A stretch of DNA of 64,000 nt from Obrimoposthia wandeli (Eukaryota), in assembly GCA_977020255.1 (NCBI GenBank), contig CDROCS010003321.1, positions 62,001 through 126,000 on the forward strand. The letters are read 5' to 3'. The notes under the pieces are model-generated. The model worked only from the letters and a program-made list of their open reading frames with translations, did not search any database and was not told the DNA's origin. Both the position numbers and the translations under genes were made by a program. Below, piece after piece: positions 5,072 through 31,235 of this stretch (positions are counted from its first letter, which is position 1; every line of letters starts with the position of its first letter).

Positions 5072-6235
5072 TTATAGTATTTGATTGGTTTCTTCAATCA
5101 AAATACGACGTGCAATGATCACATTCATGATTTCATTGGTCCCCTCAAGGATACGATGCACTCTGGTATCACGTAAATAACGCTCCATCGGGTATTCTTT
5201 CATGTAGCCATTGCCACCAAATATTTGCAATGCTTGGTCGCATACCTCAAAACATGCATCGGTTGCAAAGCGTTTTGCCATTGCACAATAGGTGCTTCTA
5301 TCGGGATGTTTATTATCAAGCTTAGTTGCCGCTAAGCGAACCATTTGTCGTGCTGCAACCAAATTGGTATTCATATCCGCTACTTTAAACTGTAAAGCCT
5401 GAAAACTTGCCAGCTCTCGGCCAAACTGTTTTCTTTCATGTAAATACTTCAATGCATGGTTTAAAGCCGCTTGTGCAGTACCTACTGAGCACGTCGCTAT
5501 GTTAACGCGCCCGCCATCTAAACCTTGCATCGCTATTTTAAAGCCGTCACCTTCAGCGCCTAACAAATTATGCGCTTCTACTTCGACATCTTCAAAAGTA
5601 ATAGTGCGTGTCGGTTGTGAATTCCAACCCATTTTTTGCTCTTTACGACCATAGCTAATACCTTTGCTATTCGCTGCTACTGCAAAGGCTGAAATACCTT
5701 TAGCGCCATCGCCCGATGTTCTCGCCATTACTAACAGTAAATCGGTGGAGCCTGCGCCTGATATAAACACTTTAGAGCCATTGAGAATGTACTTGCCATC
5801 TTCTTTACGTGCCGTGGTTTTCAATGATGCAGCGTCTGAGCCTGCATTTGGCTCTGTTAAGCAATAAGAACCGAGCTTTTCTCCACTGCTAAGCGCTTCA
5901 CTCCATTGGCCTTTTGTTTGCTCACTGGCAAAAGAGCTCAACATCCAGCTGACCATGTTATGGATGGTTAAATAAGCGGTTGTCGAGGTACAGCCCATCG
6001 CTAGCTGTTCAAAAATAATACTTGAATCTAAACGCGACAAACCCAAGCCTGCACCCTCTTCAGGGGTATACAGACCACACATGCCCATTTCACCGGCTTT
6101 TTTTAAGACCTCTATAGGGAAATGCTGTTCCTCATCCCAACTGGCCGCATGAGGCTGCATTTCCTTTTCAGCAAATGCTTTGGCCATTTCACTAAAAGCC
6201 AATTGGTCTTCGTTTAATTCAAAATCCATAGCCAC
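5072..6235 (-). CDS. Acyl-CoA dehydrogenase (probable isobutyryl-CoA dehydrogenase)
   Basis: YCLTEPNAGSDA, NGSKVFISG, QIFGGNGY, RILEGTNEIM. Confidence 0.92.
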   Translation of the reverse strand: MAMDFELNEDQLAFSEMAKAFAEKEMQPHAASWDEEQHFPIEVLKKAGEMGMCGLYTPEEGAGLGLSRLDSSIIFEQLAMGCTSTTAYLTIHNMVSWMLSSFASEQTKGQWSEALSSGEKLGSYCLTEPNAGSDAASLKTTARKEDGKYILNGSKVFISGAGSTDLLLVMARTSGDGAKGISAFAVAANSKGISYGRKEQKMGWNSQPTRTITFEDVEVEAHNLLGAEGDGFKIAMQGLDGGRVNIATCSVGTAQAALNHALKYLHERKQFGRELASFQALQFKVADMNTNLVAARQMVRLAATKLDNKHPDRSTYCAMAKRFATDACFEVCDQALQIFGGNGYMKEYPMERYLRDTRVHRILEGTNEIMNVIIARRILIEETNQIL

Positions 6236-6475: not shown

Positions 6476-7969
6476 TTACTTCAATTCAATTGTGGTATTA
6501 ACACCGGTGTCAATGTCTTCATCGAACCAGCGTGAGGTGACGGTTTTAGTTTCGGTGTAAAACTTAACTGCCTGCTTACCGTATGCATGTTGATCACCGT
6601 AAAACGATTTTCTCCAACCAGTGAACGAGAACATAGGCAATGGCACAGGTACGGGTACGTTAACACCCACGTTACCGACTTTTATTTCATGCTGGTATTT
6701 GCGTGCTGCTGCACCAGATGAGGTAAAGATTGAAGTACCGTTACCGTATGGGTTTTCATTAATAAGAGCAATTGCCTCCTCTAATGTATCTACTTCAATA
6801 GTGATCAATACCGGGCCAAAAATTTCTTCTTGGTAGATTGACATATCAGTCGTAACGCCTGTGAACATAGTAGGGCCAATGAAGTTACCCTTCTCCAGTC
6901 CTTTTACCACAACATCAGAACCATCTAGAATGCAGTTTGCACCAGCAGCTTTGCCCTCTTCAATAAACTTCAGCACACGTGCTTTAGCCGCTGGGTTGAT
7001 CTGTGGACCATAACCTGCATCCGCATCATCCCAAGCACCTGGGCGAACCTTAGCAAGGGCATCTTTAATTTCAGGAATGAGCTTTTTCGACTCACCCACA
7101 AATACGGCAACAGAAATAGCCATGCAACGCTGACCAGCAGCACCTACTGATGCACCAGCAATATTATTAACTACTTGCTTTTGAGCGGCATCTGGCATAA
7201 TGACCATATGGTTTTTAGCACCGGCAAACGCTTGTACGCGCTTCATGTGATCGGTACCTGTTTTATAAATATACTCACCTACTGCAACCGATCCAACAAA
7301 TGAAATTGCGGGTAAATCTGGGTGAACCAACAACTGTTGAACCACTTCTTTAGTACCGTGCAATACTTGTAACACACCTTTAGGTGCACCTGCTTCTACA
7401 AACAACTCAGCGAGTCTGTTAGGCGTTAGTGGATCTTGCTCTGATGGCTTAAGGATAAAGGTGTTACCGCAAGCGATAGCCATTGGGAACATCCAAAGTG
7501 GGATCATTGCAGGGAAGTTAAACGGTGTAATACCAACACATACACCTAAAGGCTGGGTGAAGCTAGAGCAGTCAATTTTGCGAGCCACGTTTTCAAGTGT
7601 TTCGCCCATGGTTAAAGAGGCAACGTTCGCTGCATGCTCTACCACTTCGATACCGCGCCATACATCACCCATTGCATCTGGGAATGTTTTACCGGTTTCT
7701 TGCGCAATAATAGTTGCCAGCTCTTCTTGGTGTGTTTTAAGCAATGCTTGATAAGCCAGCATAACGCGCGCTCTATCGCCAACTGATCTTTCTTTCCATA
7801 GCTCAAAGGCATCTTTTGCTGTTTCAATAGCCAGCTCAACTTCTTCATCCGTAGCACAAGGCACTTGCGCGATAACTTCTTGCGTTGCAGGGTTTACAAC
7901 ATCCAGTAGAGTTGTGCTTTTACTGGTGACGAATTCGCCGTTTATTAATAGTGGGACTTGCTTAATCAT
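6476..7969 (-). CDS. mmsA: CoA-acylating methylmalonate-semialdehyde dehydrogenase
   Basis: [43 protein letters not shown]. Confidence 0.95.
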
Positions 7970-8200
7970 GAGCGCTATACCTTTGATTTTTTTATAGAGT
8001 GCTTTTCAAGCAAAGCGCCTTTAAATGGGTATTACATCCACTTTTTTAAGCGAGATATAATTCATTGAAACGGCTTTTGAAGAGCAGCATTTTTTTATTG
8101 CATTGATTTAAGCACAATAATCAGCTGCTAAGGATTGATAATCTTGTGCTATTGATGGATTATATTGCGATTCGCATCATCCTTTAGTCTAGGTCTTATT

Positions 8201-9100
8201 ATGAGCCAAACATCCAACTGGCCACTTCCCAGTGGTAGCCATCGACTTGTAGTCCCTAGGACTATAACTGCTAAGTTGCATCAGCACGCGCTGTGCGCCG
8301 ATCTTTATCCAAAGGCCTCTGGTTTCTATAAACAAGCAAAAAAGCATACAATGTTGCGCAGAACGCATGATGACAATTTACTTATATATTGCATCCAAGG
8401 CTCTGGCCAATTTAGTGTTGATAGCACCACGCTAAAGGTCAATAGCGGAGATTTACTGCTGCTACCCAGTGGTGTGGCGCACGCGTACCAAGCCGATGAT
8501 GAAAACCCTTGGAGCATCTATTGGATCCACTTTAGCGGGGAGAAAAGTAATGATTTTATGCAGTATATAAAGACAGAAAAAGAAAGCTTAATCATACGAG
8601 TAGGAGTCAATGCAGGGCTAATTAACAACTTCGACATGCTCTTAGAGAGCCTACAATCTAGTATTAATATATCCTCGTTTATTCATGCATCTAACATGCT
8701 AAGGCAAATTTTAACCCACATCCCGTTATTGCGACCTTTAGCCAAAGCCCAACAAATGGCGCATCAATTTGATTTAGAGCGAGTACACGCCATGATGCAA
8801 TCTAACATACACAGTAATTTAGACTTAGATACCATAGCGAACAGCATCAACCTTTCAAAGTTTCATTTTATAAAAAAGTATAAAGAGCTCACTAACACCA
8901 CCCCTATCAATTACTTCATTCATTTAAAAATTGAACGCGCTTGCCACCTTTTAGATATTTCAACAAAACCCATTAAAGAGATCAGCTTCAACCTAGGTTA
9001 TGAGGACACTTACTACTTTTCTAGAATTTTTAAGAAAGTAATGGGCATATCGCCAACCCAATATCGACAGATGCGTAATAGTACGTTTAATAGTGATTAA
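8201..9100 (+). CDS. mmsR: AraC family regulator (MmsR-like)
   Basis: Cupin-like N-terminus plus AraC HTH (LGYEDTYYFSRIFKKVMGISPTQYR); divergent from mmsA; ATG at 8201 preferred over TTG at 8165. Confidence 0.8.
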   Translation: MSQTSNWPLPSGSHRLVVPRTITAKLHQHALCADLYPKASGFYKQAKKHTMLRRTHDDNLLIYCIQGSGQFSVDSTTLKVNSGDLLLLPSGVAHAYQADDENPWSIYWIHFSGEKSNDFMQYIKTEKESLIIRVGVNAGLINNFDMLLESLQSSINISSFIHASNMLRQILTHIPLLRPLAKAQQMAHQFDLERVHAMMQSNIHSNLDLDTIANSINLSKFHFIKKYKELTNTTPINYFIHLKIERACHLLDISTKPIKEISFNLGYEDTYYFSRIFKKVMGISPTQYRQMRNSTFNSD

Positions 9101-9297
9101 TGCTCAGTGGTGTAATCACTGGACTTAACTTATTTCTAACATATACTGCGTGACTAAATCACTTGATCATACAAAGCACTTTATTGTAAATTTTTTATAA
9201 ATAAAGAAACGAGATCAAGAGGGTTCTCATTACTCACTGTTAGCACCTGTTTTAGTTAAATAGTGTATCTAGCGGCTATTAGCTCAAAAGAAGATAT

Positions 9298-23648: not shown

Positions 23649-24767
23649 TTAAACCTTAATTTCTTGCTGTGTTGCACAGTGGATACTCCCTCCGCCTGAA
23701 GCAATTGCATCGATTGCTATTTGCTCTATCGCTCTGTTGGGGAAAGCTTTTTCTAACGTTTTTCTTGCTCTCTCATCTGTTGTTTTATCACCGAATTTTT
23801 GTGCGATAATGGCGCTATTACAAACGTAATAACCGATATAACCCGCTGCGAAATCACTACTATCATAGGTTTCGTTAATTTCATCAGGCGTATCCACAAT
23901 TATTACTTTTAGCTTGTTACCAAAAGCATCTTCACTCTTATTTAATACTTCAATATTTTTTCTAGTTATCTGGTAGTCAAATGAGTCACGATAATTATCT
24001 CTGCTTACTATTACCTCTCCAGGCTTGGTAAAGCGCGCATAAAAATCAGTATGACCATCAGTAATATCTTTACCTTTAATACCTTCTAACCAAATTATTT
24101 TTTTTAATCCAAGTAATTGTTTCAGCTCAAACTCAATCGCTTTTTGGCTTATGCCAGGGTTACGATTACCGTTAATGATACAGCTCTTAGTCATGATCGC
24201 CGTTCCTGCACCATCTACCTCAAAGCAGCCGCCTTCAAGGGTTAGTTTTGATCTTTTAGTGATAGAGTTTGTAGAATTACTTATAAAGCTGGCTACTTGG
24301 GAATCTAGCTCATGCTCTTGTTTTCCTCCCCAACCGTTAAAGTTAAAGTCAATTGCGTATTTTTTACCATCAGAGCCTTTAACAAAGGTAGGTCCGGTAT
24401 CTCTTAACCACAAATCATCTGTTTCAAATTGAATCAAATCTAGCGGATAATTGTTAGCACTAAGGTCTCCTAATAGTGAAAGGGCTTCATTATAATCATC
24501 GGATGACACCAGCATTGACACAGGCTCGTATTTGGCTATAGTTTTAGCAATTAATACTAAATTTCTTTTCACTTCAGGTATTTGCCGTTTAGACCATATA
24601 TAGTCATTTGCGACAAAAGACATCCAAGTTCTTTCATGAATTCCACTTTCATCTGGCATTGTGAGAGATATGGCTGAGGAGCTATTTTGGGCAAGAACGC
24701 TGTCAGCAAGAACAAAACCTGCCGATAAATAACCCATACTTTTTGTAAAATATCTTCGAGTAATCAT
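23649..24767 (-). CDS. Agmatine/peptidylarginine deiminase family protein with Tat signal
   Basis: DLWLRDTGP, LEGG, TDGHTD, GGGSIHCATQQ; N-terminal TRRYF twin-arginine motif. Confidence 0.9.
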   Translation of the reverse strand: MITRRYFTKSMGYLSAGFVLADSVLAQNSSSAISLTMPDESGIHERTWMSFVANDYIWSKRQIPEVKRNLVLIAKTIAKYEPVSMLVSSDDYNEALSLLGDLSANNYPLDLIQFETDDLWLRDTGPTFVKGSDGKKYAIDFNFNGWGGKQEHELDSQVASFISNSTNSITKRSKLTLEGGCFEVDGAGTAIMTKSCIINGNRNPGISQKAIEFELKQLLGLKKIIWLEGIKGKDITDGHTDFYARFTKPGEVIVSRDNYRDSFDYQITRKNIEVLNKSEDAFGNKLKVIIVDTPDEINETYDSSDFAAGYIGYYVCNSAIIAQKFGDKTTDERARKTLEKAFPNRAIEQIAIDAIASGGGSIHCATQQEIKV

Positions 24768-24784
24768 CTTAATACCTCTATGTG

Positions 24785-24824
24785 CTCATAACTTTTTGGT
24801 ATGCCACGTTGGTCGCGTTATGTG
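24785..24824 (-). repeat. Collapsed attC-like junction
   Basis: Minus strand CACATAAC...GTTATGAG inverted core-like pair, followed by GAGG RBS and the deiminase ATG. Confidence 0.35.
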
Positions 24825-24861
24825 AGCTTCGCTATGAGATGAATTGCTTCATTTGATAAGT

Positions 24862-25323
24862 TTAAACCACTAAATATTTCAGCTTAGCTAACATTCTATT
24901 TTGCGCTGCGCTGTAAACTTCTCCAACGGGTATTGCGCCTTTTTTTAGATAGAAGTCCTGCGCATCGGGATCAGATACTATATAAAATTCAGCTATGGCC
25001 AAAAAATCACACTCCTTTAGTATCTGTTTAAATGCAAGGCTGCCGATACCTTTACCTATTGCTTCAGGTAGTAACCAAAGGTGATCCAACATATTCTCTT
25101 CGCCTTTAGTTATTGCAATAGTTATCGCAAAAAAGCCGATGACCTTCGCATTTTTAGTCATTAACTTAACGGTATTGTCGCGAATGTATTTACTTTCAAA
25201 TTGCAGCTTTGAGCGCCATACTTCTAATTGTTCTCGCGAATAACCCCAGTGCCCTTTCGATTCGATCAATATATCTCGAAGTAGCTGATGTTGATCTGAT
25301 GTTGCATCTGCAAATTCAACCAA
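24862..25323 (-). CDS. GNAT family N-acetyltransferase
   Basis: LDHLWLLPEAIGKGIG, SDPDAQDFYLKKGA. Confidence 0.88.
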   Translation of the reverse strand: MVEFADATSDQHQLLRDILIESKGHWGYSREQLEVWRSKLQFESKYIRDNTVKLMTKNAKVIGFFAITIAITKGEENMLDHLWLLPEAIGKGIGSLAFKQILKECDFLAIAEFYIVSDPDAQDFYLKKGAIPVGEVYSAAQNRMLAKLKYLVV

Positions 25324-25474
25324 TTACTTCACCTTTCATCCTTTCATCTTTGACCCAGGCATGAGTCGTCTGTAATAAAACGCGAACCCCATGATTAAAA
25401 TTGTATTAAATAACTCTTACACTGTCGAATAATACGACTATCACGCTTTTGTTATCAGACTTCTTTATCGGTGT

Positions 25475-25921
25475 TTATAATGAAGGGCGAGAGATATAGG
25501 CTGTTTTTTCATCTGAGGTAAAACCGCATGCTCGATAAAATGCATGTGTCGACTCTTTGTTTGAACCTGTTAGCAACATTACTTTATAACACTGTACTGA
25601 CCAACAGTAATTAAGTGCATGGGCCATAGTTTTTCGAGCATATCCTTTACCTTGCTCAGCAGTTTGGGTGATAACGTTTTCAATGACAGCATAAGGCGCA
25701 GCCGCTCTGGTCAGATTTGCTATAATATTAACGTAACAACTTGATAGCAGCTGCCCATCACTTTTTTCTAAGACAAATATAGTGAGCCAATCACTTTCTA
25801 TAATCTGTTTAAACACAGCCTTACCGATTTTATCCTCAAGTATAGGGTCTTCTGGCTGAAGTTGCCTATAGAGGATCATAATCGAATCAAAATCTTCATA
25901 AGCCGCTGCTCGTACTATCAT
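25475..25921 (-). CDS. GNAT family N-acetyltransferase
   Basis: IENVITQTAEQGKGYA, CYKVMLLTG, FYRACGF. Confidence 0.9.
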   Translation of the reverse strand: MIVRAAAYEDFDSIMILYRQLQPEDPILEDKIGKAVFKQIIESDWLTIFVLEKSDGQLLSSCYVNIIANLTRAAAPYAVIENVITQTAEQGKGYARKTMAHALNYCWSVQCYKVMLLTGSNKESTHAFYRACGFTSDEKTAYISRPSL

Positions 25922-25967
25922 CTAACTCCCTAATATTTAAGACATCTGTTGCACGTTACTGTTAAGT
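25920..25967 (-). repeat. Collapsed attC-like junction
   Basis: Minus strand ACTTAAC (RYYYAAC) ... GTTAGAT (GTTRRRY) overlapping the GNAT start codon; only 48 bp and inner arms do not pair. Confidence 0.35.
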
Positions 25968-25991
25968 TGAGCTTTTGCATACACACTCTCT

Positions 25992-26759
25992 TTACTTTTT
26001 TAATCCAGCCTCACGAGGACCAATAAAACGAGCGAGTGCTTGCACTAACTTAGAAAATCTATGCGCTTCAATGCTTCCCTGTGATGGAGTAGCATACGTT
26101 GCGTTAATTTCCATTTGTATGGCAGGCACCCCATGCTTGAGCGAAAACTTAGTAAGCGTGGCATTTTTAGCAGCACTAAAACGATTATACGAAATACTGA
26201 CAATGCCCTCTTTTTGCAGCTGTTCTATTAGCTTAAATAGCAGTGAGTCATTACCCATGAGAGACTCGCCATTCATTGTACCAAGATCTACATCAAATGA
26301 GCGGTATGGGTGACTTGCATGCAGATCTAATATATAAGCGGGTTTTACCTCTCGGATTAAATCGGCCAGCTGTTCTTTGAATTGGTTATCATCGTAATAG
26401 TTTGGATCAGAAGGCCCTTCGTAACTTGAATATATAACATATGCACCTGTTAGCTCCCCAAGAGTAACGGCTAGCGCAGCTGTCCCACCACCATCAGCAA
26501 ACCTGCGCTTTCCATTTCTTAGTGGGCGCGTAGCGTGCGGTGCCGTTACAATAACAGGTATTGTACCTTGCACTACTTCAAACCATTTTTTTCCATCAGG
26601 GATGGCCATATTCTCACGCGTATTTAGCTCTTTTTCAAGAGAGATAGCAGCGATTACCTGTTGAGGTCCTACCAGTGCTCGAAGAGGAAAATCGGGCTTT
26701 ACTGAACATGCTGATAGCACTATTAACATCATTAAAGCTAGGATATATTTTAACTTCAT
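25992..26759 (-). CDS. Lipoprotein with N-formylglutamate amidohydrolase-like (Zn hydrolase) domain
   Basis: Lipobox LSAC; TAPHA, DPN, LDLHA, DLGT, IQME. Confidence 0.6.
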   Translation of the reverse strand: MKLKYILALMMLIVLSACSVKPDFPLRALVGPQQVIAAISLEKELNTRENMAIPDGKKWFEVVQGTIPVIVTAPHATRPLRNGKRRFADGGGTAALAVTLGELTGAYVIYSSYEGPSDPNYYDDNQFKEQLADLIREVKPAYILDLHASHPYRSFDVDLGTMNGESLMGNDSLLFKLIEQLQKEGIVSISYNRFSAAKNATLTKFSLKHGVPAIQMEINATYATPSQGSIEAHRFSKLVQALARFIGPREAGLKK

Positions 26760-27060
26760 AGAGATTCCATTTTTGTCACATCAATGCCTAAGTTACAATT
26801 TAAACGTGTTTTTCGATTTCATAAAGCTCACTTTTTTCATGATCAAAATAAAATACCACCGACTATCATTGTACATCACTCTATCGTTTTCCCAATTTAG
26901 CAAATAGCTCTGACAGTTATTTTTAAAACTGTTGCAGCTTGTGGTAACAACCAGCAAACCAAAAAATAGCATAATTTTCAATATATTAAAAACACTTATT
27001 AATGTAATAACAAGCCAAGCTGAATAAAACACACCGCTAATACTTCACATGGTGTTTTAG

Positions 27061-27516
27061 TTATTTGTTAGAGGGCTGCTGTATGTACGTATAAGTACCA
27101 TCATCGCCATTGATCAATATTTCGAACGAAAATTCACTTCCATCATGACCATTTGTCGCGCTCGCCTGCACTTTTACTGTGTTTATTTTTACTTGTTTAC
27201 AGCTTAGGCCATCGAGTTCTATTTCAGCATGATCATTATTTATTTCAGAAAACGAAAAGCCTACTACAGTGTTATATTGCGTTTGCTCAAGGTTAATAGC
27301 AACCATATCAACGAACAACATATCTTGCCCCCCATAGTACAGTTGAAAAACCCTAAACTCGCCACTTTGCTCCTTCTTTCTCCATTGACCACATTTTGTG
27401 AGATGCTCAATCGAGCCAAACAAGCTCGACTTTGCTTCCTCATAAGAGACAACTCTACCTAGAGCATGAGTAACGCTTGAAATAAGTAACAATGAGATGG
27501 CAAAGAATATTTTCAT
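27061..27516 (-). CDS. Secreted hypothetical protein
   Basis: Signal peptide MKIFFAISLLLISSVTHA; 151 aa; two Cys. Confidence 0.7.
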   Translation of the reverse strand: MKIFFAISLLLISSVTHALGRVVSYEEAKSSLFGSIEHLTKCGQWRKKEQSGEFRVFQLYYGGQDMLFVDMVAINLEQTQYNTVVGFSFSEINNDHAEIELDGLSCKQVKINTVKVQASATNGHDGSEFSFEILINGDDGTYTYIQQPSNK

Positions 27517-27746
27517 GTGAGCTCTTATATGTAATTAATATGTGCAGCTTACTGAGTCAGGTTGGTTTTGTCTCGTTAAAACAATGGCCACTTATCTTGA
27601 TAAATAAACGGTCAGTACAAGCTAAGAATACCTGTTAGAACTATTTCAATAGTTTTGAATGCTGACTTTGGAGATGTAGTACTTTGACTTATAAGCACTC
27701 TATTTAAAGTAGAGGGTGCAACATCTAATTGCTTTGCTACTGTAGA

Positions 27747-27911
27747 AGTAACACAAATGCATTACTACTATAACTAGTAACGTAAATAGGTAGCTATCAT
27801 AAGCAATAACACAAACGCGTCCTCACTGGAAAAGTAACTTAAATACGTTACTACTAGAAAAAGTAACATAAACACGTTACTATAAAAGTTAAGTAATATT
27901 GAATCACTACA
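27747..27911 (+). repeat. Array of six ~29-bp units, each an AGTAAC-N8-GTTACT palindrome (putative operator array)
   Basis: Unit starts 27747, 27776, 27805, 27833, 27862, 27892; units 4 and 5 are perfect palindromes; ends about 20 nt before the SatD start. Confidence 0.8.
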
Positions 27912-27932
27912 TAAGTTTGTGAGAACCTAGAT

Positions 27933-28595
27933 ATGCAAGAACTAGAGCAAGAAGAACCAAACAAGTCAATAGCAGTACTAAGTGGAGATATTATTGGTTC
28001 TACCGAGCTACCACACACTATGTATGAAGATTTACTATATACATTGCATAATCAACTAGCCTTTATTGAAACTCTTAACCCAAACAACAAGTTTGAGATA
28101 AGTAGAGGCGATTCATTTCAAGTTCTAATACAAGATGCCGAAAATGCAGCCAAATATGCACTACTCCTTAGAACGAGTCTAAGAAGTAGAAATAACAATT
28201 ATGACTGCAGAATAAGTATTGCTATAGGCCATGATGTATCCATCCGGCACACAATAGCTAGTTCAACTGGTGATGCTTTTACAATGTCAGGTCGGGCATT
28301 AGATAACATGACTTCTGACACATTGAAAGTCACGACAGTACTACAACCGTTCAATGAGCATTTTGGTCTACTTACCAAATACTTAGATCAACACATATCA
28401 CAGATGACAGAGAGACAATGTGCAATTACATATATTATATTAAAAAATCAGCAGTCACTCACTCAGAAAGAAATCGCTGAGTTGTTGGGGGTAAATAGAG
28501 TGTCAGTAAATCGCTCTATCAACACCGCAAATTTAAACTTTGTAGCTGAATATACCCAGTTATTTTCACAAAAAGTAAGAGAGTTTTTCCTTTGA
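27933..28595 (+). CDS. SatD family protein: class III nucleotide-cyclase-like domain plus C-terminal HTH
   Basis: AVLSGDIIGS, RGDSFQ, RISIAIG, TGDAFTMSGRALD; HTH TQKEIAELLGVNRVSVNRSI. Confidence 0.82.
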   Translation: MQELEQEEPNKSIAVLSGDIIGSTELPHTMYEDLLYTLHNQLAFIETLNPNNKFEISRGDSFQVLIQDAENAAKYALLLRTSLRSRNNNYDCRISIAIGHDVSIRHTIASSTGDAFTMSGRALDNMTSDTLKVTTVLQPFNEHFGLLTKYLDQHISQMTERQCAITYIILKNQQSLTQKEIAELLGVNRVSVNRSINTANLNFVAEYTQLFSQKVREFFL

Positions 28596-29323
28596 GTACC
28601 TTCCTTGTATTATTTTTATCTCTAGTTATATTGCACCTCCTGGTTGACTTTTATTTCCAGCCTACAGCGTGGGTTCAAGATAAAAACGATAGGCATGCAA
28701 AGTCTTCTAAGTTGCATTTACACGCAGCAATACAGGCTATTGTTTCATGTATTCCCATTTTATATATCACTACAGATTGGCAATCAGTCGTTTGTGTGTT
28801 GCTCATAATTGGGTCTTCGCACTGGATAATTGATCTTGGGAAAACATATTTGAACAGCCGGCTGCGCTATTTTATTCTTGATCAAATATTACATATCATT
28901 GTTTTAGCCGGAGTCGCTCTACATATATCACAGCTAGAGTGGTCATTTTCTGAACTGATAAGCGTGATTATTACAGAAAACAACCTAGCGATAGCACTCG
29001 CTTATGTTGTTATTTTCAAACCTACGTCTATTTTAATCGGCTCTATTTTAACCAATTACATACCCGAAGAAAGTGAGGAAAACGAAGGCTTAATTTCTGG
29101 GGGAGAAGTTATTGGGTATTTAGAACGAACGCTCATACTGACCTTTACAATCACAGGGCAACTATCGATTATAGGTTTCATATTAGCAGCTAAATCCATA
29201 TTCAGGTTTGGCGAGTTGAACAATTCAAAAAACCATAAACTTACAGAGTATGTACTCTTAGGATCATTGCTATCTGTGACCATTACCTCATTGGTTGGAT
29301 TAGTCATAAAGAATTTTCTTTAG
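28592..29323 (+). CDS. DUF3307 domain membrane protein
   Basis: LHLLVDFYFQ, HAAI, SHWIID, DQILH, IGYLERTL, AKSIFRF, EYVLLGSLLS; TTG start overlapping the SatD stop. Confidence 0.85.
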   Translation: MSTFLVLFLSLVILHLLVDFYFQPTAWVQDKNDRHAKSSKLHLHAAIQAIVSCIPILYITTDWQSVVCVLLIIGSSHWIIDLGKTYLNSRLRYFILDQILHIIVLAGVALHISQLEWSFSELISVIITENNLAIALAYVVIFKPTSILIGSILTNYIPEESEENEGLISGGEVIGYLERTLILTFTITGQLSIIGFILAAKSIFRFGELNNSKNHKLTEYVLLGSLLSVTITSLVGLVIKNFL

Positions 29324-29329
29324 TAAGTG

Positions 29330-29561
29330 TTTAAGGTAAAACGGCACAGTTACCTGTGCCGCCTCCATACAGATCCTGACATGAAAAATCGCCCATCTAT
29401 TATTTCACCGCTTGTGTAAGTTACGCGCCCCCTGAATACTAATTCACCATGTATGCCGCTTGGATACACCCAAGGGCTGGATCTGATAATAACGTAACAT
29501 ATCTTCAGATCTCGCCTGTTAAAACTATTCAGTCGACTTAGCCGATTCAGCCATTTATACG
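29330..29561 (-). mobile_element. 3' remnant of a second (outer) group II intron
   Basis: Minus strand encodes a maturase C-terminus YKWLNRLSRLNSFN.../MLRYYQIQPLGVSKRHTW*, then a degenerate DV and a DVI hairpin GGCACAGGTAACTGTGCC (29343-29360). Confidence 0.65.
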
Positions 29562-30971
29562 GTCGCGGTAGGAATGGTCATTACTGCCTCCCCGGCACAG
29601 ATCCGGACGTGCACTACTAACGCATCCGGCTTCTACCTCGGGTATTTGGCGTAAAAACGCTGTTTAGATAAGGATGTACAATCCTAAGTTTAGGTAACCA
29701 ATATCTCATATAATACTTAAATCGCTCCCTCGTCATTCGGTGCTGTTGACTGCGTCGTCGTAAGTTTTTCAACCATAGCTGCTTAACTCCTTCTATAAAT
29801 TGCCTCTGCTTGTGACCATTGTAAGGGACGCCATAATAATTTATGTGCCCTTTCACTACTCGCCTTAGCCAGCGGCACGTCTCCCACGGTTTATCACAAA
29901 GTCGCTTTCGAAGCGCTAACTTTATCCGTTTCAGTTGAGCTAATTGTCTAGTACGTTTCGTCTTTCTCTTTACAATTACTTCACCTGACAATTTCCTGCC
30001 TATATAGTGAGTAAAACCTAGAAAATCAAACGTCCCCGGTTTAGCCCTTGACGGTTTATCTCTACATTGAGCTAGAGAAAATCGACCAAAGCGTATCAGT
30101 TTTTTTCTTAGGATGTATTTTCAAACCAAAACTCAATAGCCTATGAGTCAGACCATACTGGAAATCAAGCGCATCTTGATACGTTTGAAATCCCAGCACA
30201 GCATCATCTGCGTATCTTATGATAGTAACGTTACCACGAGCATATTTTCGTTGCTTATTCAGCAAAAGATCAAAGCTATAATGCAGGTAAATATTGGCCA
30301 ATAGTGGCGATATCACCGCTCCTTGTGGAGTGCCTATTTTTGACTGCTGTCGGTGATTATGCTCATCGACAACTCCCACTTTAATCCATTGCTTAATAAG
30401 TCGAATAATACGCTTATCACCTATTCGGTGTTCGATGAACTTTATGAGCCAGTCATGCTCTACTGTATCGAAGAACTTGCTGATACCCAAATCCAACACC
30501 CAATTTACTTTCCTTTTCATTATCGCTATATGCAATGCATCATGCTGCCCTCTGCCAGGTCGAAAATCATATGAGAAACCAAGAAAACCGGCTTCATATA
30601 TTTGATTGAGCAACCACACTATTGCTTGCTGGACGATTTTATCTTCCAAACATAAAATACTCAGCCCTCGTTCACTGCCGCCTTCTTTTGCGATAAACAT
30701 TTACCTTGCAGGCTTAGGTTTATAGCTTCCTCGCTGAAGCTTTTGGTGTAGTGCTTGGATGTTCTCTTCCAAAGATGACGTATAATCATGCCACGTTACT
30801 CCGTCACACCCAGCTGCCGCCCCACGCTTAAATTGAAGGAAATTCTGGCGAAGTAGATCTACGTTTATATGATGGTAAAGGTTGGTAAACTGTTGCTTCT
30901 TATCTTTCTTTGCGGCATTTCGCACACCCCGCAAGCGAGACATCACATTATCCCAGCTCTGAGTCTGACTG
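29562..30971 (-). mobile_element. Group II intron, 5'-truncated, with frameshifted RT
   Basis: DV GAAGCCGGATGCGTTAGTAGTGCACGTCCGGATC (29633-29600) and DVI ending CTACCGCGAC at 29562; RT fragments upstream. Confidence 0.88.
29633..30971 (-). pseudogene. Group II intron reverse transcriptase/maturase, at least 3 frameshifts
   Basis: Fragments AAAGCDGV, EDKIVQ, GTPQGAVISPLLANIYLH, RYADD, TFDFLGFTH, GHINYYGVP, RRRSQ, ...YAKYPR* in different frames. Confidence 0.9.
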
Positions 30972-31235
30972 TTACCCGATTGATAATAATCGTGCGGAAA
31001 ACAGCGTACCTCCGTGCGTGATAGGTCGCAAAAACTGGCTGTTTAGTGCAAGTCAAAAAGAGGCTAAAAGTAGTGCTAACTTATATAGCATTATAGATAC
31101 AGCCAAAGCCAATGGTTTAGAACCATACTGTTATCTAAAATTACTCTTTACCCAATTACCTTCAGCTGAAACGTTAGAAGATATCGACGCTCTACTGCCT
31201 TGGAACTGCAAGGGTGTAGTTACTTAGCCGCTTAC
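30972..31235 (+). mobile_element. IS66 right-end remnant (TnpC C-terminus plus right IR)
   Basis: YPIDNNRAEN...GRKNWLF...AKANGLEP...LLPWN; ends CCGCTTAC (revcomp GTAAGCGG); no left end. Confidence 0.85.

Follow-up and report, generated by a model that had tools for sequence, protein, structure and literature searches.

The gene name satD has been in use since 2001, and satD and satE belong to the sat operon of Streptococcus mutans. In this species the two genes are listed in a cluster that also holds ylxM and ffh (PMC12077213). Automatic annotation pipelines already name some members of the families 'cyclase domain', but our literature search found no paper on the mechanism, the operators or the pairing statistics of SatD or DUF3307, the satE-type membrane protein family. 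Among better described proteins, the class III cyclases (Ma1120, Rv1264, CyaC) have the palm fold and two metal aspartates in common with SatD, and the Pycsar system (PycC and PycTM) likewise sets a cyclase-fold protein beside a multi-pass membrane protein. Here we analyze a satD/DUF3307 gene pair in a 64,000-nucleotide stretch of DNA (hereafter the window) from the Obrimoposthia wandeli assembly GCA_977020255.1 (contig CDROCS010003321.1, positions 62,001 to 126,000, forward strand), which a search of sequencing runs finds in its source sample only, with no RNA run. An initial annotation of the window presented the pair as a candidate undescribed two-gene system; this remains apt for the mechanism, but the satD/satE name and the Pfam families date back years.

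The window pair has both families in the same order as S. mutans. The DUF3307 protein matches PF11750 (E = 6.2e-27, 94.6 bits, cut-off 23, residues 7-125), while SatD falls below the Pfam SatD model PF16264, with no match even at E ≤ 1. Unlike the S. mutans genes in their ylxM/ffh cluster, the window pair stands by itself and has a predicted operator array of its own. We lean toward reading it as a self-contained, autoregulated two-gene operon, in which the palm domain of SatD would take a nucleotide triphosphate (NTP) and metal as input and the DUF3307 protein would be the regulated membrane partner. This reading stands on the fold and conserved residues, on the obligatory pairing of the genes, and on the phased predicted operators with their covariation with the helix-turn-helix (HTH), the operator array being the main result of the analysis. 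The parts of the module, with the basis for each, are as follows.

27734-29328, forward strand: the whole conserved module of operator array, satD and DUF3307 gene (blastn against loci L001-L007)
27747-27881, no strand: predicted operator array of five 20-nucleotide (nt) units (repeat search)
27891-27910, no strand: candidate sixth, degenerate unit (read from the sequence; weak)
27933-28595, forward strand: satD, 220 amino acids (open reading frame, homologues, AlphaFold 2 model)
27960-28367, forward strand: palm domain of SatD, residues ~10-145 (fold, profile, conservation)
28404-28529, forward strand: HTH of SatD, residues ~158-199, sigma-70 region 4-like (weak matches, model, covariation with the half-site)
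28592-29323, forward strand: gene of the DUF3307 (satE-type) membrane protein, 243 amino acids, TTG start (open reading frame, Pfam, model, pairing)
28592-28966, forward strand: N-terminal four-helix membrane bundle of DUF3307 with His/Asp residues (conservation, hydropathy; the Pfam model covers residues 7-125)
29069-29320, forward strand: C-terminal domain of DUF3307 with invariant motifs (conservation)

Both open reading frames reproduce the coordinates of the initial annotation exactly. The stop codon of satD (TGA) and the start codon of the DUF3307 gene (TTG) share the letters TTGA. Such a 4-nt overlap, read here from the sequence and repeated in many relatives, is the classic arrangement for translational coupling. 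Homology in blastn to seven loci from Aeromonas, Vibrio, Oceanisphaera, Shewanella and Alteromonadaceae (L001-L007) begins at 27734-27831 and ends at 29323-29328, with unrelated flanks on both sides. Since DNA homology with the nearest relatives starts at the array and stops no more than five bases past the DUF3307 stop codon, the unit comprises the array, satD and the DUF3307 gene, about 1.6 kb in all.

The array consists of five 20-nt units of the form AGTAAC-N8-GTTACT, which follow each other with a 29-bp period, except for 28 bp between units 3 and 4. Two of them, at 27833 and 27862, match this form perfectly, a third, at 27747, deviates at a single position, and those at 27776 and 27805 are degenerate. 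A perfect GTAAC-N8-GTTAC occurs only twice in the 64-kb window, at the two array units nearest to satD. The candidate sixth unit, between the array and the start codon, keeps the 29-bp register, but its left arm AGTAAT alone is recognizable, so that it counts as weak. An Rfam search finds no RNA family within the array. The same motif and the same period are found 5' of satD in relatives: two Vibrio species have three units, Alteromonas has five, Aeromonas eight and Shewanella mangrovi ten. The S. mangrovi array (L006, 5750-6000) is the longest, at about ten units, and two kinds of spacer, CATTTTTG and ACCTTAGA, take turns in it, so that the pattern as a whole repeats every 58 bp. One further site in the window, with one mismatch to the predicted operator, lies at 29336-29361 (GTAAAACGGCACAGTTAC), 13 nt past the DUF3307 stop codon, where it overlaps a GGCACAG/CTGTGCC hairpin; it is outside the region homologous to relatives and may be a chance occurrence.

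The spacing extends well beyond close relatives. We searched the upstream regions of satD across phyla without a preset motif, accepting two palindromes with perfect 5-nt arms, an equal spacer and near-identical arms, and taking control windows from the same loci. Of 98 satD upstream regions, 48 hold tandem palindromes 28-30 bp apart, versus 15 of 3922 control windows, and the palindrome distances form one peak in the histogram (28 bp, 15; 29 bp, 33; 30 bp, 3). The half-site, by contrast with this constant geometry, differs between clades: GTAAC, ATAAC, ATAGC, TATGC, GACAG, TGGCC and TATAG are found, and each change is accompanied by a change in the recognition helix of SatD. The correspondence of recognition-helix type and half-site runs as follows: NRVSVNRS with GTAAC, TQPTINRR with ATAGC, EQSTIHRR with TATGC, KQTVTDSL with GACAG and SQPAVHKR with ATAAC. 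Loci from the viral collection (L081-L100, for example L082 and L083) display a GC-rich type, TGGCC-N10-GGCCA, at the same 29-bp period. The reading helix itself, at residues ~189-198, belongs to helices 160-198, which give weak matches to HTH models of the sigma-70 region 4, MarR and Crp types in Pfam and NCBIfam, in line with the HTH first noted after the palm.

Constant geometry and a sequence that changes in concert with the helix reading it are the mark of a cognate operator, here a predicted one. Because the half-site varies together with the recognition helix, the satD operon is very probably regulated by SatD itself, and the 29-bp register, fixed across phyla, implies contacts between adjacent SatD dimers. 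The earlier suggestion of self-control by way of the upstream array gains strong comparative backing from these data.

The pairing of the two genes is strict. Among 80 fetched loci, the DUF3307 gene lies directly 3' of satD in all 76 that have enough downstream sequence. Starting the search from DUF3307 in viral contigs gives a similar picture, with satD directly 5' in 19 of 20 loci; the pair is found on 20 of 2.9 million viral contigs (IMG/VR), where it may belong to true phages or to the host flanks of prophage calls. All-against-all clustering of the neighbors, and Pfam searches of the genes directly downstream, reveal no conserved third gene. The neighbors are unrelated housekeeping genes, including those for pantoate ligase, XdhC, a short-chain dehydrogenase, a CDP-alcohol phosphatidyltransferase, an alginate lyase, HesB-type Fe-S proteins, Hsp70, a tRNA synthetase and OTCase. 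Four long SatD matches were considered as possible SatD-DUF3307 fusions and rejected: they carry TPR, DUF285 or plain extensions, not DUF3307.

The pair is also widespread. SatD forms 2114 clusters at 50% identity (E ≤ 1e-3), and a pattern-limited scan of species-representative genomes yields 256 loci, distributed over Pseudomonadota, Bacteroidota, Planctomycetota, Acidobacteriota, Verrucomicrobiota, Chloroflexota, Cloacimonadota and one archaeal metagenome-assembled genome (MAG). The window protein, for which we found 33 close homologues, is connected to the family through its relatives: PF16264 is matched by 99 of 145 homologues (best E-value 7e-17), three close homologues carry a precomputed PF16264 match, and the nearest Atlas clusters in a protein-language-model search are SatD (score 0.96). 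By this transitive homology the window protein is placed in the family as a divergent SatD.

In the AlphaFold 2 model of the window SatD (predicted local distance difference test, pLDDT, 96.4), residues 13-135 form a beta-alpha-beta-beta-alpha-beta palm, and the HTH is among the helices that come after it. The initial annotation had proposed a cyclase-like fold, and the comparisons agree with it. A profile of 145 homologues searched against PDB sequences matches the class III adenylyl cyclase Ma1120 (E = 1e-4), with the D-I-x-x-S-T of SatD aligned on the first metal-aspartate motif and G-D on the second, so that D19 and D60 fall on the metal aspartates. The best Foldseek matches of the model in PDB and Swiss-Prot are class III cyclases and the Pycsar uridylate cyclases (PycC), the latter at rank 14 in one listing and at ranks 2-4 in the other. 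Foldseek and VIA-align 2 place residues ~8-150 in the superfamily of cyclase, GGDEF and Cas10 palms.

Conservation was counted in an alignment of 145 diverse SatD homologues (A2), mostly 25-35% identical to the query. All four motifs that had been pointed out in the sequence are present, and the aspartates of the two acidic ones, D19 and D60, are invariant. In G18-D19-I-I-G-S23, D19 is conserved in 145 of 145 sequences and S23 in 139; in R58-G59-D60-S-F-Q63, R58 is found in 143 and G59, D60 and Q63 in all; R93 of R93-I-S-I is found in 139; and in G113-D-A-F-T-M-S119-G120-R121, S119 and G120 are found in all, R121 in just 72. The invariant residues are D19, G59, D60, Q63, S119 and G120, and the nearly invariant ones T17, G18, S23, R58, F62, R93, G99, G113 and A115. 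This pattern makes it very likely that SatD retains a two-metal nucleotide-triphosphate site.

Canonical cyclase chemistry, as judged from the same alignment, is not assured. The equivalent of the class III transition-state Asn is position 117, which is variable (R in 40 sequences, T in 23, V in 22, I in 18 and E in 14), and the equivalent of the transition-state Arg is position 121, with Arg in only half of the sequences, so the Asn/Arg pair is not conserved; both positions are assigned by motif register (G+4, G+8) in our own alignment, not by superposed coordinates. On this point the class III catalysis implied by the initial annotation is not supported. Unlike class III cyclases, SatD also seems to have no recognizable base-specifying pair (Lys/Asp or Glu/Cys), with no conserved Lys before the G-D motif in the sequence alignment, and it is fused to an HTH. 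In the model a 14-residue loop joins the strand at 92-99 to the helix at 114-125, and the beta-hairpin dimerization arm (beta4-beta5) appears to be cut to a short loop. Comparison with GGDEF diguanylate cyclases gives a similar result: the corresponding site of SatD is R-G-D-S-F, with Arg in place of the first Gly and Ser (116 of 145) in place of the catalytic Glu of the fourth position (Glu in 7 of 145). The window SatD matches neither the Guanylate_cyc nor the GGDEF model of Pfam. On the evidence of model and fold comparison, its palm is equally near to GGDEF and class III, and forms a branch of its own within the nucleotide-cyclase palms, not a specifically class III domain.

The same domain order is found in regulators of the PucR/YxkF type, where a GGDEF-like domain is followed by a C-terminal HTH, as SatD likewise joins a nucleotide-enzyme-type domain to an HTH. 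PucR and YxkF are among the AFDB Swiss-Prot matches that span both SatD domains (ranks 7 and 13), but the superposition is poor (TM-score 0.26-0.38, root-mean-square deviation 15-19 Å), and SatD differs in being far smaller, in retaining the metal aspartates and in always having a DUF3307 partner.

The model of the DUF3307 protein is all-helical (pLDDT 91.3), and DUF3307 is the sole credible Pfam family both in the window protein and in 65 of 68 relatives. A search of AFDB with the model returns DUF3307 clusters only, and no solved structure resembling it was found. The His and Asp residues that had been noticed within transmembrane (TM) helices are well conserved in an alignment of 68 sequences: H15xxxD19 in 62 and 61, H44 in 62, H77xxxD81 in 62 and 62, and D97-Q98-xx-H101 in 61, 65 and 67. 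Hydropathy and the positive-inside rule would put the N-terminus outside and H15, D19, H44, H77, D81, D97, Q98 and H101 in the cytoplasmic half of TM1-4, where they look like one metal centre facing the cytoplasm. The C-terminal half, which the initial annotation did not mention, is conserved even more than the N-terminal one. It holds ten residues invariant in the 68 sequences (I174, G175, E178, R179, K201, R205, E219, Y220, G224 and S228), arranged in the motifs IG-x-LER, AAKS-x-x-RF and EY-x-x-x-G-x-x-x-S, and it is also found as separate short proteins in AFDB clusters.

In the autoregulated operon that we favor, SatD would be a one-component transcription factor, whose C-terminal HTH would bind as dimers to palindromes of 18-20 bp, here GTAAC-N8-GTTAC. 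Neighboring dimers would touch, so that the sites would be occupied cooperatively and the promoter region covered, the outcome probably being repression. The palm domain, with its predicted two-aspartate, two-metal nucleotide-triphosphate site, would serve as the input: binding or turnover of NTP and metal might alter the pairing of palms and thereby the occupancy of the operator, in the manner of the 'trigger enzyme' BirA. The analogy to BirA, a trigger enzyme, is one of logic only. The DUF3307 protein would be the only regulated product besides SatD, with translational coupling keeping both in step; its seven helices and cytoplasm-facing His/Asp site suggest a metal-dependent membrane enzyme or transporter, the probable partner of SatD.

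Several points weigh against this account. DNA binding by SatD, its ligand and the direction of regulation rest on inference for every family member, and to the same order belong the choice of repression over activation, any catalysis and the function of DUF3307. Invariant metal aspartates suit a true enzyme no worse than a pure sensor. About half of the 98 loci lack a tandem palindrome under the strict rule that demands perfect 5-nt arms, so that not every member may have this layout, and a consensus scan finds no sigma-70-type promoter before satD, which leaves an overlap of operator and promoter unsupported. The enzyme or transporter role of DUF3307 is a guess from residue chemistry, because the protein has no solved structural relative. 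Finally, Kremer et al. are said to have reported in 2001 that S. mutans satD and satE mutants show no acid-tolerance phenotype.

The enzyme question leads to the best of the other explanations, a messenger pathway outside defense, which we consider possible but clearly less probable than the autoregulated operon. SatD would then be an active nucleotidyl cyclase or transferase, perhaps activated by dimers aligned on the array, whose product gates the DUF3307 protein or is hydrolyzed at its His/Asp metal site, the pair forming a synthase-receptor or synthase-phosphodiesterase unit. The clear palm superfamily fold, the invariant metal aspartates, the nearly invariant phosphate-loop-like D-I-x-x-S-T, R58 and R93, the strict and translationally coupled pairing, and the conserved polar residues of DUF3307, all predicted to face the cytoplasm within reach of a nucleotide, accord with such a pathway. 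They are countered by the variability of positions 117 and 121, the Ser in place of the GGDEF-type Glu in RGDSF, the apparently reduced dimerization arm, and the lack of any known nucleotide-binding domain in DUF3307 (a Pfam scan of the window protein and its relatives finds no cyclic-nucleotide-binding domain).

The two HxxxD motifs raise another explanation, metal homeostasis, in which the two aspartates would let SatD sense a divalent metal, alone or together with a nucleotide, and SatD would repress DUF3307 as a metal transporter. The paired HxxxD motifs are reminiscent of the site through which zinc transporters of the cation-diffusion-facilitator (CDF) type move their metal, H15xxxD19, H77xxxD81, H44, D97 and H101 all lie within TM helices, and an autoregulated operon of a regulator and a membrane protein resembles the regulator-plus-exporter layout of the ArsR/CzrA type. 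We nevertheless regard this as unlikely: neither the sequence nor the fold of DUF3307 matches ZIP, CDF or other transporter families, its conserved residues sit at the cytoplasmic ends of helices and not mid-membrane, its best-conserved C-terminal half has no metal ligands of the HxxxD kind, and no metal theme is found among the neighboring genes.

Just as doubtful is a DNA-templated variant of the enzyme idea, in which palms would pair across adjacent array sites and only then make, or stop making, a new nucleotide messenger, with the His/Asp site of DUF3307 as receptor or hydrolase. The centres of the half-sites in the array alternate at ~13 and ~16 bp. If true, this would amount to a new messenger pathway with a new membrane-partner fold across bacterial phyla.

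The initial annotation favored cyclic-nucleotide signalling or abortive infection, with the Pycsar anti-phage system as its model. In a Pycsar-like system, infection would trigger SatD to make a cyclic nucleotide that activates the DUF3307 protein as a membrane-disrupting effector. The pairing of a cyclase-type protein with a membrane protein fits this logic, Pycsar uridylate cyclases are among the fold matches, and the window's subfamily seems to behave as a mobile cassette, judging by palindromic repeats in Aeromonas and by homology that ends at the module ends. The remaining evidence makes a defense role very improbable. PADLOC has no model for either protein: DUF3307 is not matched at all, and SatD only weakly, by an HTH (WYL) model. 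Pfam and PADLOC show no enrichment of defense genes among 145 neighboring proteins from 38 loci, which are diverse housekeeping proteins with a few generic helicase-type PADLOC matches; the initial annotation had named such a lack of enrichment as refuting its idea. DUF3307 has no domain for binding cyclic nucleotides, the catalytic Asn/Arg pair of SatD is not conserved, and an HTH and elaborate operators are not known as features of PycC. The small number of viral contigs with the pair gives no phage link either way, and in S. mutans the genes are listed with ffh and ylxM (PMC12077213).

A toxin-antitoxin-like module, with SatD as HTH antitoxin and autorepressor and DUF3307 as membrane toxin, is the least credible explanation, since the regulator-first order, the 4-nt overlap, the palindromic operators and the cassette-like surroundings in Aeromonas, which suit a mobile subfamily, are set against a partner of 243 residues and seven helices with ten residues invariant across phyla, unlike known membrane toxins, against the location of the pair among housekeeping genes in most phyla, and against a conserved 145-residue palm with an intact metal site that an antitoxin would not need.

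The surroundings in Aeromonas australiensis deserve a description of their own. A palindromic repeat of ~75 nt (stem GGACACCCAYC...GGTGGGTGTCC) brackets the module and each small gene that follows it, in a cassette-array-like organization without the usual attC core sequences. Its copies in locus L001 are at the following positions.

5595-5696: palindromic repeat
7492-7593: palindromic repeat
8041-8142: palindromic repeat
8888-8989: palindromic repeat
9042-9106: palindromic repeat

These repeats suggest cassette-type mobility of the SatD/DUF3307 subfamily to which the window pair belongs. In the window, searches around the module found neither attC nor any other shared repeat family, and integron cassette status was not assigned there.

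The window module lies, as had been described, between an array (the palindromes at 27747-27881) and the debris of an intron and an insertion sequence (IS). Downstream, a group II intron remnant at 29562-30946 on the reverse strand holds a reverse-transcriptase reading frame in three pieces.

30701-30946, reverse strand: reverse-transcriptase piece
30062-30700, reverse strand: reverse-transcriptase piece, matching RVT_1 (4e-32)
29617-29991, reverse strand: reverse-transcriptase piece

A match to domain V/VI of the Rfam family Intron_gpII at 29562-29634 is weak (25 bits, E = 0.06, below gathering). The C-terminal fragment of an IS66-family transposase (30910-31227, forward strand; DDE_Tnp_IS66_C, 2e-15) abuts the intron remnant, and the two are stacked mobile-element debris. 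Upstream of the module, at 23649-27516 on the reverse strand, five closely spaced genes have a cassette-like layout, in which no shared attC-type repeat was found. They encode an agmatine-deiminase-type PAD_porph protein (7e-98), two GNAT acetyltransferases, a weak N-formylglutamate-amidohydrolase-like protein and a protein of 151 residues that begins with a hydrophobic stretch and matches no family.

The families themselves were already catalogued, and what is new here is the predicted operator array with its recognition-helix covariation. The comparison removes as unsupported the tempting label of a 'new defence system', and it points to SatD as a one-component regulator built on a palm domain, with DUF3307 as its obligatory membrane partner: a common pair, spread over many phyla of bacteria and present in at least one archaeal MAG, whose families have been listed without a described mechanism. 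The pair offers testable handles in a palm with an intact two-metal site, a predicted operator that can be read for each clade and a conserved 29-bp spacing. With its cyclase-fold domain joined directly to an HTH, SatD would be a compact addition to the nucleotide-linked transcription factors, and DUF3307 would be a membrane protein fold without a solved relative.

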